Position numbers and translations under genes: made by a program. This document shows positions 45,764 to 49,100 of a stretch of 64,000 bases of DNA, one piece after another. Numbering within the stretch: position 1 is the stretch's first letter; each line of letters starts with the position of its first letter. This stretch comes from Ylistrum balloti (taxonomy: Eukaryota). The notes beneath the pieces are model-generated. The model did not search any database. It saw only the letters and a program-made list of their open reading frames with translations, and had not been told where the DNA came from. Location of the stretch: positions 124,001-188,000 of the forward strand of contig NW_026782269.1 in the NCBI RefSeq assembly GCF_031769215.1, given 5' to 3'.

Positions 45764-46109
45764 GTAGATGATGAAAACTGTTTTACTTCATTATAGTGTG
45801 ACATTCAGGTGCTTTTTTCATTTGTATCGAATAATTATGGTATTTCATATATATGTCTGTTCCTATAATCGCACTTTGAGGAAACGTTTGATTATTCTTT
45901 GCTCACATTTGCCACCTTATCTGCACTCCGACTGTTCTTAATTTTGTGATAATGCATTGATATATTTATGTTACTGTACAGTATACATAATGATTTCATT
46001 TGCTAGATAGTTGTTGAACAGCTTTAAATCCAGTATTTGAATGGCATATTTTAAGTTGTTTCTACGTTGTTATGTTGTTGTTTTCAGGTCTTAACAACTG
46101 GAAAAAAAC

Positions 46110-46173
46110 ATGGCCATCCAGGGAAATTATATTTGTGAACCTCAAACTTGACAAGAAATACGATATGGTATGA
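46110..46173 (+). other. Two upstream ORFs in the RSPRY1 leader: uORF1 46110-46151 (MAIQGNYICEPQT*) and uORF2 46165-46173 (MV*)
   Basis: Both ATGs are in strong context (aacATGg, gatATGg); the uORF2 stop overlaps the RSPRY1 long-form ATG (ATGA). Confidence 0.6.
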
Positions 46174-49100
46174 TTGTAACATTTTGGATATTGCATAGCG
46201 TTTTTAGAAGTGCAATACAAAACAGAGGACTGCTGAAATCAGCACTGCAGTCATTGGTGTGGAAAATGGGAGCATGTATTTGTAAAGATAAGACCAACAA
46301 CAGAGACAATCGAAGAGGTAGCAATGTTGTGTCAAGTCTCATGTCTTCTGAGACAAGTACAAGGGGGCAGCATTCTGTGCAGACAGATTCAAGAATGGGT
46401 GCCCACAGGCCGACATCCTCTGGAGGCTGGCGATCAAGAGAGAGAAAGCCTGTAGATGCACTTGTGCTGGAAACACTTGCTGTTATTCGTTCTCTTGTAG
46501 ATAAGTATGTAAACAAATGAATGTATCAGTTTATCAACAAAGGTGTAATATAAAAAGGTAGCATATTGCTTTTCAGATGATTCTATGAAAAGGTAGAATT
46601 TTTTTTTTCATTTCATTTCCTGATATGTGGTTAATGCATACATATATTGAGAAAATGAAAACCAAAGGAATTGTTATCAGAATAAAACTCTTCTAGATTT
46701 AGCTTCTGTTTGAAAAAGTGACATTTTTATTTTCATTTACATTTTGAATCCAGAATAAAAGCACTTAACACATACATATATAAGTATGGGGTGCAGTTTT
46801 AATATTTATCCATACTGGTTGGAATTTATCATGCAATAACGTCATTAAATAAATGGTTAACAAGTTTAATATGAGCTAAACCCTTGGGTATCATTTTTTC
46901 CCCTTTAATGATATCATTAACTGAATTAATCATATCAATAGTTCATTTAGTGCTTAAATATCATTAGAAACTCTTATTTATTGATATTAGTTAAATTAAA
47001 GATATAGATATATCATTAAATTGAATTATTGACACCACTTCTTCTGTGAATAAATGATATATCAATCACTGATTGTACCTAATGATATTATTAACTCTAT
47101 TTTATTTCACATCATCAGAAATTAAATGTAACTATGTCACCATCAACTGAGTTTTTATCTCAAACAATAAATGTCAGATCTAAATATAGATCTTGTCTGA
47201 AATTGATGAAGTAGAATGTGGATAGGGAGTGATTTTGAGTGTTTGACTAGTTTGACATATGTTGACAGTGAGAGGGAACCACCACAGGCGATGCTGTGTC
47301 TACAGGAAGTAGCTGAGTCACAGAGTGGATGGCTGGATATGGTCAACTCTCTGATCTATTCTATACCTATACAGGATCCTTTAGGACCTGCTGTGGTTAC
47401 TCTACTCTTAGATGAATGTCCTCTTCCAACCAAGGTAAAATGGCATGTCTTCAAGTTATGGTAATACAGCATTGTAAACAGAATGCTCTTCCAGCATCAT
47501 TACTTTAATACTGGTAGATATCAGATAATTAACCACCCAGCATATATCATATATCAAATTGTTTTCTTGTGATGTTTTGAAATATAGATTTTCAGGTATC
47601 TCACTAGTCTTAATTCTTTTATCTTATAAATCTTATAAATTAAAAAAAGCAAATGTTTTTTCTTTCATGTTTTTTTTTCTCAAATCTAAGGAAACAACAT
47701 TGATTTTATGTGAAAAGATGAATTTGACCAACGAAGAACCAGGGGCCAAAAATTTAAACACTTTTCGTCAGATCCATAGGAATAATGGAGTTGTCCTTGG
47801 TTGTTTAGCAGAAAAATTAGCAGGTAAGTAGTATATACATGTAATTATATATAAATTCCCTATAGACGGTTACATTGAGTTCTCCATAGATAGTACTGAA
47901 TAACATATGAAGACCTTGTAGATAAGAATATATGAGGTCCCTGTGCATATTGAGCTACATATATAAATTTTTTGCTTTTTTATCGAGTCAAAGCCTACGA
48001 CAATTTGTTCATCAGTATAAGATGAAGCATTGACCTTACTTTTGCTTGCCATGTTGACTCGTTTCAATGCAGTTATTGCCCTGTTGCTATTTCAGATAAT
48101 TAAAGCCTGTTACTTTAGATTTGGTACATGATATCAATTGGATATGAGCATTGGTACCTTTTCTTTTCAAATACAGTATACATCTTGCAGTAGACCTTTT
48201 AAGATTACCTTTTATAAATTGATATTTCATTATATGATATGGTTCCATCCATTATTTCATCTTGATTTTTGAGGATTTGTCATCTTCTGATGACTCCTTT
48301 CTAATTCTAATGAACTCTGAAATTTCAGGACCAAACAGTATCGCTCTTTTGACTTCTAGAGTAATGGATTACTTACTGGGAAATCTAGTAAGTATGTAAG
48401 GGCCTGACTGTAATCTTTTAGTCATTATTGAAACAATTAAACATCTTCAGTATTACATCAAAATGATCTGAACAGAGTTGGATCCTTTGTTTCACAAATG
48501 GTACCTCATCATATGTTCCATAAACAATGGTAAATTATACTGGAAATTACATCATGCTTGCCCAGTTTATTTACAGCATTTGGAATGTATTAGATAAATT
48601 TTAGTAGTATGAAGCCTGTAAAGAATTCTTAATTCTTAAAGTTTTGTCAGAAACTGATTAAGTCTTACAGAAATTATAAACAAAGAACGAACGGACATAT
48701 CATGTTAAAAATTAAATTTGCTACTTTAATGCAGGTGCTCTAATTTTGAATGACCAGCTTTTATGTCGTGTTATCTAAATCCTTTTCAGCCTTAATTTTG
48801 TGTATAATGTTGTGTTGTAGGACATGTCACTGCCTTCTGTAGTCATACTTCATTCCTTGGTAGCATTGGAGAAGTTTGCACAGACGAGTAAGTAAAACAT
48901 ACTAGTAGTGACATAGATCAGACATGCCGGAGTGATCTTGTTCTTTGTTGTGTTGTACATGCTTATTGATATATCTGTGAACATTATGAAGTGTATACTG
49001 TTCTAATCCAGCCTTGAATAAATGATTGATTAAAGAGTTGATAGTACAGCTGTACAGACCTATCCCACTACTGTGTATTGGGTGGGTAAAACTTAAGCAA

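Follow-up and report, generated by a model that had tools for sequence, protein, structure and literature searches.

Whether an mRNA with two in-frame start codons yields one protein or two is the question raised by the first coding exon of RSPRY1 in the scallop Ylistrum balloti. The exon was analyzed within a 64,000-nucleotide stretch of DNA (the window; assembly GCF_031769215.1, contig NW_026782269.1, positions 124,001-188,000, forward strand), and all coordinates given here are window positions. In this exon a start codon that opens a short hydrophobic leader peptide is followed, in frame, by a start codon that opens a Met-Gly-Ala-Cys-Ile-Cys-Lys sequence, and both are preceded by upstream open reading frames (uORFs), the last of which stops on the first of the two starts. 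From the sequence evidence we favor, at a probability of about 55%, a two-proteoform model in which uORFs guide start choice in RSPRY1 as in the C/EBP genes.

The gene at 46088-46504 is RSPRY1, predicted to encode a SPRY/RING ubiquitin ligase, because the product of the exon is 100% identical to residues 1-111 of P0083, the RSPRY1-like RefSeq model of Ylistrum balloti, and P0083 bears a SPRY domain (PF00622 at 361-480, E 3.6e-23) and a C3HC4 RING (PF13920 at 527-570, E 3.2e-11). The name given to the gene in the original prediction, which had been made from the DNA letters, was thus borne out.

Start codons and uORFs of the scallop RSPRY1 leader

The features of the exon on which the argument turns are as follows.

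46088-46504, + strand: first coding exon of RSPRY1, made up of the 5' leader, codons 1-111 and two bases of codon 112 (splice consensus, protein identity).
46110-46151, + strand: uORF1, 13 codons, context aacATGg, TGA at 46149-46151 (sequence; scallop conservation).
46165-46173, + strand: uORF2, ATG-GTA-TGA, the TGA overlapping the long AUG (sequence; scallop conservation).
46170-46172, + strand: candidate start codon of the long form (MIVTFW...), context ggtATGa, that is, G-3/A+4 (sequence; MIVxxW orthologues).
46173-46265, + strand: coding region of the leader peptide, residues 2-32, an 8-residue hydrophobic cap followed by a variable linker (AlphaFold2, hydropathy).
46266-46286, + strand: candidate start codon of the short form with its MGACICK dual-acylation-type motif, context aaaATGg, that is, A-3/G+4 (sequence; orthologue alignment).

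ATG 46266 opens MGACICKD in frame with ATG 46170, the stop of uORF1 lies 18 nt before ATG 46170, and no ATG occurs in any frame between the two starts. Both ATGs, their contexts and the two uORFs had been placed at these coordinates by the original prediction, and all were confirmed in the sequence. Its further remark that no ATG separates the starts is true in all frames but within chance, as an ATG-free gap of 93 nt was found with P = 0.23 in codon-order shuffles. Likewise, a uORF stop within -7 to +3 of the long AUG arose by chance in about 40% of shuffled leaders. This chance rate is raised because the 'ATGAT' of Met-Ile holds a fixed TGA in the +1 frame, so that many frame-1 uORFs must end at +3. 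Thus, the pattern in this single sequence is not significant by itself; its weight comes from conservation, and the case therefore rests on comparison.

Among scallops, the ATG and first 9 codons of uORF1 are kept in Mizuhopecten and Pecten; the stop is the same in Mizuhopecten, and in Pecten the end is shifted by a 5-nt insertion. At uORF2, three scallop genomes and the mRNA contig L005, four pectinid-like sequences in all, share the string ATGGTATGATTGT without any change. Outside ATGGTATGATTGT the leader of L005 cannot be aligned with the scallop leaders.

Conservation of the two starts across Bilateria

Orthologues were retrieved with a profile of three exon-sized open reading frames (ORFs), which returned 58 N-terminal exon ORFs. 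A cluster look-up then led to a full-length clam protein that, used as query, matched 706 proteins at E<=1e-10, mammalian RSPRY1 (54-58% identity) among them. With the exon alone, phmmer returned two exon-sized ORFs only, and a first word-index search returned none. Primate entries were used solely as protein N-termini, with no primate or human DNA in the comparison; the rodent-type mRNA contigs L009 and L010 encode an N-terminus identical to that of Mus.

By this approach, 82 full-length orthologues were found to start with M-[IL]-[VI]-x-x-[WFL] and to carry, 24-53 residues further in, an internal MG(x)xCxC; they come from mammals, birds, reptiles, frogs, teleosts, gar, shark, amphioxus, Ptychodera, two nemerteans, many bivalves and Haliotis, among others. 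A further 28 orthologues, many of them ORFs from mRNA-length contigs, begin exactly at the MG Met; these include horseshoe crab, spiders, ticks, crustaceans, octopus, Aplysia, Biomphalaria, Pomacea and some bivalve models. Conservation of both starts from molluscs to mammals, as had been proposed, was therefore upheld, and the N-terminus that had been given for human RSPRY1 (MIVFGW...RS...GLL with an internal MGNSCICRD) agrees with the proteins of ape, mouse and other mammals. Alignment of 51 sequences showed no variation at M33, G34 and C36 and almost none at C38. Conservation of the leader peptide is limited to the first seven or so residues and the basic residue that follows, the linker varying freely; the ratio of nonsynonymous to synonymous substitution rates (dN/dS) of the scallop leader is 0.2-1.0, from few sites.

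At the DNA level, the short AUG has A-3/G+4 at 9 of 9 loci from 8 lineages, and the residue before the MG Met varies (K, S, R, T or N at these loci; T, K, R, A, N, I or S among the proteins). The long AUG has A at +4 throughout, a pyrimidine at -3 in 4 of 8 lineages, and never both A-3 and G+4. The two AUGs are 87-120 nt apart across lineages and share one exon in every genome examined; the mRNA-length contigs L005-L010 carry both, together with the upstream ATGs of the leader, which are thus present in mature mRNA. The best-supported picture from these sequences is that the MG start would be the universal core, as the sole start in many lineages and always in optimal context, and that the MIV cap would be an ancient accessory lost several times.

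Most oyster ORF calls in the P0088 cluster (P0190-P0203) are of 613 or 616 residues and start at internal leader Mets (MNRS..., MLYMNRS...) rather than at MIV. Start-calling, contigs that lack their 5' end, or true loss of the first AUG could account for these starts.

uORF stops at the long AUG, lineage by lineage

We examined eight lineages (scallops, oysters, a third bivalve lineage, clam mRNA, rodent mRNA, Xenopus, Ptychodera and Lineus) for the position of uORF stops relative to the long AUG. A uORF stop lies within -7 to +3 of the long AUG in 8 of 8 and within -1 to +3 in 6 of 8, a recurrence that speaks for the original prediction. Leader sequences outside scallops cannot be aligned; even so, every lineage has a uORF with its stop at the long AUG, as listed below.

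Third bivalve lineage (L002, L007): ...TGATG at the long AUG, last stop base at 0.
Oysters (L001, L006): an in-frame uORF and an out-of-frame uORF starting at -10, last stop base at -7.
Clam mRNA (L008): a short uORF, last stop base at -4.
Rodent mRNA (L009, L010): TAGATG, last stop base at -1.
Xenopus (L013): TAGATG and a frame-1 uORF, last stop bases at -1 and +3.
Ptychodera (L011): a frame-1 uORF, last stop base at +3.
Lineus (L012): TAATG, last stop base at 0.

The chance of such a stop, estimated from shuffles, is 0.28-0.56 per lineage, and the product over the eight lineages is 3.4e-4. Xenopus was tested after the interval had been fixed, and passed.

Exon boundaries

The exon start at 46088 is the probable one from splice consensus, scallop alignment and an oyster comparison of mRNA with genome. 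The acceptor, ttttcag|g, has a polypyrimidine tract and an AG at 46086-46087 that fit this start, and the donor aa|gtatgt closes the exon at 46504 with its GT at 46505-46506. When the window was aligned with Mizuhopecten (L003) and Pecten (L004), similarity was poor in the intron and near coding level directly after the acceptor AG. In oyster, alignment of the mRNA-length contig L006 with the genomic contig L001 revealed that an 831-nt intron is removed exactly at the equivalent AG, which lies 145 nt before the long AUG.

Sequencing run X2 is genomic DNA; one of its contigs is unbroken over 44593-47636, and its contigs run through introns. Compared with the window, the unbroken contig shows G>A at 46198, which changes Ser10 to Asn in the leader peptide, and one extra A at 46101, in an A-run upstream of uORF1; every AUG and uORF frame is left intact. 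Run X1 matched a repeat only, which leaves X2 as the one run that covers the locus.

N-terminal protein features and candidate acylation motif

AlphaFold2 (51-sequence alignment, mean predicted local distance difference test score, pLDDT, of 80.5) placed a helix of low confidence at residues 2-17 (pLDDT about 60-66), a disordered stretch at 19-89 and, starting near residue 95, a folded body. By heuristics only, the scallop leader has 8 uncharged residues from Met1, a best 19-mer Kyte-Doolittle mean of 0.66 and no n-region. Vertebrate leaders have a 12-residue uncharged run and Kyte-Doolittle means of 1.35-1.86 over 19 residues, a hydropathy that may explain the prediction of a signal peptide. 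The scallop MGACICK and other invertebrate forms (78 sequences) match the N-myristoylation pattern PROSITE PS00008, G-{EDRKHPFYW}-x(2)-[STAGCN]-{P}, a match that presupposes internal-AUG initiation.

Published data on RSPRY1

Human RSPRY1 was enriched 5.9-fold (-log p 4.0) in a YnMyr pull-down from HeLa cells (Thinon et al. 2014, Supplementary Data 1, PMC4200515), with 4 peptides in each of 4 of 4 labelled replicates and zero in controls; the entry has no annotated N-terminal Gly and a '+' in the palmitome column. The human leader carries five ATG and four non-ATG uORFs, hand-annotated from initiating-ribosome peaks, two of which share one stop and are 117 and 60 nt long (Filatova et al. 2023, PMC9943669). 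These lengths are close to those of the rodent in-frame uORFs that end at TAGATG, which is consistent with adjacency to the AUG in human as well.

In its passages on RSPRY1, Varland et al. (2023, PMC10611716) describe the protein as a 'putative NatC substrate (MI-)' and as the sole top genetic interactor with a level shift in NatC-knockout cells. The Ser50 phosphosite of mouse Rspry1 is attributed, in the relevant passage of PMC12860745, to cytosolic kinases of the GRK/CaMK2 type, and muscle-cell cytoplasm is given as the site of the protein in a case report that cites Waddell 2016 (PMC7616131). A secreted class is assigned to RSPRY1 by UniProt/BioGRID, as quoted in PMC11817781; PMC8183621 terms it a 'glycoprotein', and one chimpanzee entry, P0180, is named 'precursor'. 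The annotation as secreted that the original prediction mentioned was thus found, and its view that an intracellular protein fits better is shared by independent literature, which points to an acylated, cytosolic protein.

Within the library searched, no paper was found to link RSPRY1 with uORFs. In literature naming both RSPRY1 and myristoylation, the two are not linked in the RSPRY1 passages of PMC10611716 and PMC12860745, and the supplements of PMC7397870, PMC6317481 and PMC6593224 hold no RSPRY1 entry.

A two-proteoform model and its alternatives

Under the model that we favor, one RSPRY1 mRNA would give rise to two proteoforms. Initiation at AUG 46170 would produce a long form with a short hydrophobic cap, Met-Ile-Val-x-x-Trp, and a NatC-type N-terminus. 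Initiation at AUG 46266 would produce a short form opening with Met-Gly-Ala-Cys-Ile-Cys-Lys, in which, after removal of Met, the Gly would be N-myristoylated and the Cys residues palmitoylated; this lipid anchor would tether a disordered tail of about 60 residues, and with it the folded ligase, to membranes on their cytosolic side. uORF1 and the two-codon uORF2, both in good context, would capture scanning ribosomes. With uORF2 ending atop the long AUG, ribosomes that had translated it could not use AUG 46170 and would resume scanning until they re-initiated at the short AUG, which lies 93 nt downstream in optimal context, and the long form would come only from ribosomes that leak past the uORF AUGs. 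We infer the use of both AUGs, lipidation, re-initiation and any physiological regulation, such as a putative stress-responsive, eIF2alpha-dependent switch, from anatomy and conservation.

Several observations weigh against this model. Evidence for internal-AUG initiation is indirect in every species, in the scallop both the transcription start and the start of the exon at 46088 are likewise placed indirectly, and a search of sequencing runs for the scallop locus found no RNA run. By shuffles, depletion of ATG between the two starts is not significant in any lineage, and by dinucleotide-preserving shuffles the number of upstream ATGs equals expectation. The interval of -7 to +3 was fixed after the first three lineages had been seen; the 'ATGAT' effect also counts here, but is already accounted for by the shuffle test. 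In rodents and the frog the uORFs have 17-37 codons, a length that lowers the efficiency of re-initiation, and in Xenopus an out-of-frame ATG overlaps the short AUG. The YnMyr probe labels S-acylated proteins too, such that N-myristoylation is indistinguishable, and the response of RSPRY1 to NMT inhibitor is unreported, as that analysis kept only annotated MG N-termini (PMC4200515). Finally, the chordate motif MGN[SNT]C[IV]C (56 sequences) and one MGH form fall outside PS00008; the former has Ile/Val where NMT prefers a small residue. The suggestion that MG-x-C-x-C-K suits N-myristoylation and S-palmitoylation is compatible with the PS00008 fit of the scallop and other invertebrate forms, provided that the internal AUG is used, and is not supported by this simple pattern for the chordate motif.

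The main rival is that the long AUG alone is used and that the internal M-G-x-C-x-C is a conserved Cys motif, for juxtamembrane palmitoylation or metal binding, behind a hydrophobic anchor; uORFs would damp translation in a general way, as they do in many regulators of low abundance, and leaderless lineages would have swapped anchors. Such a product would suit a MIVxxW N-terminus conserved across Bilateria, RefSeq models that begin at MIV, and the NatC data, which in the RSPRY1 passages of PMC10611716 imply a long form in human cells; an upstream-ATG count equal to chance, a palmitome flag and YnMyr capture compatible with S-acylation alone, and the poor NMT match of the chordate motif all point the same way. 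We nonetheless consider it unlikely. The MG Met is invariant in 82 of 82 leader-bearing proteins, though a buried Met has no obvious role, and keeps A-3/G+4 in 8 of 8 lineages while the residue before it changes. Moreover, 28 orthologues start exactly at this Met, and all 8 lineages have a uORF stop at the long AUG. The reverse could also hold, with the short MG form as the only functional product and the leader as a tolerated in-frame extension, rarely translated as uORFs shield its AUG. Repeated loss of the leader (in Ecdysozoa, cephalopods, and several gastropod and bivalve models), a scallop leader dN/dS of up to about 1 and the Ser10Asn variant in another individual speak for this. It is hard to reconcile with the first seven residues, M-I-V-x-x-W-hydrophobic, which are kept from scallop to mammal, amphioxus, hemichordate and nemertean and are unexpected in an untranslated or neutral extension, nor does it agree with the NatC-dependent level in human cells, which points to an MI- N-terminus (RSPRY1 passages of PMC10611716); we regard a short-only product as improbable.

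Only slightly better are the prospects of a mechanism in which alternative transcription starts or splicing, not uORFs, choose the N-terminus, transcripts that start inside the exon past the long AUG giving the short form only. Assembled ORFs that begin at MG (P0188) or in mid-leader (P0139), and the oyster calls of 613 and 616 residues beginning at internal leader Mets, are what such transcripts would yield, and the scallop transcription start is not fixed. These truncated ORFs may, however, stem from 5'-incomplete contigs or start-calling choices, and both AUGs lie in one exon in all genomes examined and on one molecule in the mRNA-length contigs L005-L010. A secreted glycoprotein from which the MIV leader is cleaved as a signal peptide is, in our estimate, very improbable. 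In the scallop leader the uncharged run is just 8 residues long and the best 19-mer mean is 0.66, to be set against the 1.35-1.86 over 19 residues of vertebrate leaders that would suit secretion, and many orthologues are leaderless and start with MG. To our knowledge, there is no ubiquitin machinery in the secretory lumen on which a RING ligase could act. The 'precursor' name of P0180, the UniProt/BioGRID class (PMC11817781) and the term 'glycoprotein' (PMC8183621) support secretion; NatC-substrate behavior, Ser50 phosphorylation by cytosolic kinases, cytoplasmic staining and YnMyr capture, as far as the cited passages on RSPRY1 go, oppose it.

The two-proteoform model thus remains our preferred reading. 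A wider claim, to which we give somewhat less than even odds, is that RSPRY1 has been a dual-N-terminus ligase since the bilaterian ancestor, one mRNA encoding either a NatC-type cap or a myristoyl/palmitoyl anchor in a ratio set by a uORF stop that sits at the first AUG. If so, the 'secreted' annotation would be in error, and the human skeletal dysplasia linked to the gene would stem from losing an E3 that is cytosolic and tethered to membranes.

Neighboring genes and other features of the window

Further features were recorded around the exon.

45341-45499, - strand: first coding exon of CFAP90, a head-to-head neighbor (68% identical to the oyster CFAP90 product by tblastn, E 1e-19).
45718-45808, + strand: conserved upstream block, candidate non-coding exon 1 or core promoter (three-scallop alignment).
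45723-45767, + strand: 14-codon ORF (ATG GAC GAC GTC ...) within the upstream block (ATG, length and TAG stop kept in three scallops).
47269-47434, + strand: second coding exon of RSPRY1 (NEREPPQAM...CPLPTK), placed by mapping of P0083 exons on the window, with the junction SLVD|NEREP seen in mRNA contig L005.

By tblastn, P0083 was mapped on the window except for residues 301-387, a stretch in which small exons would have escaped the mapping. The window's own SPRY exon gave a PF00622 match below threshold (E 7.6e-05, 23.2 bits versus a 26.3-bit cut-off).

A Pfam scan of the CFAP90 exon gave no match. CFAP90 also neighbors RSPRY1 in L003, L004, L006, L011 and L012 (scallops, oyster, hemichordate and nemertean), and the two look like an ancient bidirectional-promoter pair. 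About 220 bp separate CFAP90 from the conserved upstream block, which ends in an invariant donor-like ATTCAG|GTG at 45808/45809 in three scallops, and the CpG observed-to-expected ratio peaks at 0.93-0.97 across 45251-46000. The ORF at 45723-45767 may be a further exon-1 uORF or a promoter element (GACGTC core). Contig L005 opens with a similar CCAA..ATGGAC string.

Elsewhere in the window, 44091-44484 is a very high-copy short repeat of roughly 175 bp, with an X2 word depth of 14,000-20,000 versus about 10 elsewhere and many loose ends at 44245/44246 and 44421/44422. Long ORFs of tandem peptide units at 53107-53705 (- strand), 55147-56100 (+ strand) and also 38964-39149 (e.g., ILSILMIYN..., MLYLASQCHDVIF...) are minisatellite-like arrays inside or beside RSPRY1 introns. 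An uninterrupted ORF of 554 codons at 59956-61620 (- strand), downstream of RSPRY1, is rich in Ser, Lys and Glu, has a Gly run near its C-terminus and gave no Pfam match.

Significance for RSPRY1

RSPRY1 is the gene for spondyloepimetaphyseal dysplasia, Faden-Alkuraya type, and recent work still handles its product as secreted (PMC11817781). If the two-proteoform model is true, the annotation of this human disease gene would be corrected, constructs that lack the 5' leader or carry N-terminal tags would yield the wrong form in the wrong place, substrate searches would belong at the cytosolic membrane face, and 5'-leader variants would be candidate pathogenic alleles. The uORF geometry would also be conserved to an unusual depth (scallop, nemertean, hemichordate, frog and rodent) despite leaders that cannot be aligned.

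Comparison with known systems

The closest likeness is to C/EBP alpha and beta (LAP*/LAP/LIP), in which uORFs reportedly direct the choice between in-frame AUGs, as Calkhoven and colleagues are said to have described in 2000; mice deficient in the uORF have also been reported. The common elements would be one mRNA, a short uORF that ends a few nucleotides from the long AUG, and a downstream in-frame AUG in good context. In RSPRY1 the uORF2 stop overlaps the long AUG, and the next AUG is 93 nt on with A-3/G+4. A point of difference is the uORF, which is of 2 codons in scallops and 17-37 in vertebrates. The forms of RSPRY1 would differ in a membrane-anchoring N-terminus, whereas those of C/EBP differ in a transactivation domain, and RSPRY1 is known here from sequence. 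Delayed re-initiation of the ATF4/GCN4 type is similar in that there are several uORFs, the last overlapping the main start; in ATF4, however, the overlapping uORF is long and purely inhibitory with no second in-frame AUG, whereas in RSPRY1 the overlap is <=4 nt and bypassing ribosomes would have a productive target.

N-myristoylated RING E3 ligases include ZNRF1/2, RNF11, MGRN1 and NEURL1, and dual acylation of the SH4 type is found in Lck and Fyn (MGCxxC). RSPRY1 resembles them in its Met-Gly, Cys within the first six residues, a basic residue at 7 and a disordered tail leading to a RING ligase. It differs from the RING ligases in that most deuterostomes and lophotrochozoans have the Met-Gly inside the annotated ORF, where it would need alternative initiation, in that its lipidation is predicted, and in a one-residue insertion (Asn) in the chordate motif. 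NatC-dependent N-terminal membrane anchors are found in ARFRP1/Arl3p and ARL8, which the long form of RSPRY1 resembles in having Met and then hydrophobic residues at the extreme N-terminus, its acetylation and membrane targeting being putative. Start choice guided by uORFs is already known, as are N-myristoylated RING ligases and anchors of the NatC type; what would be new is their combination, deeply conserved, in RSPRY1.

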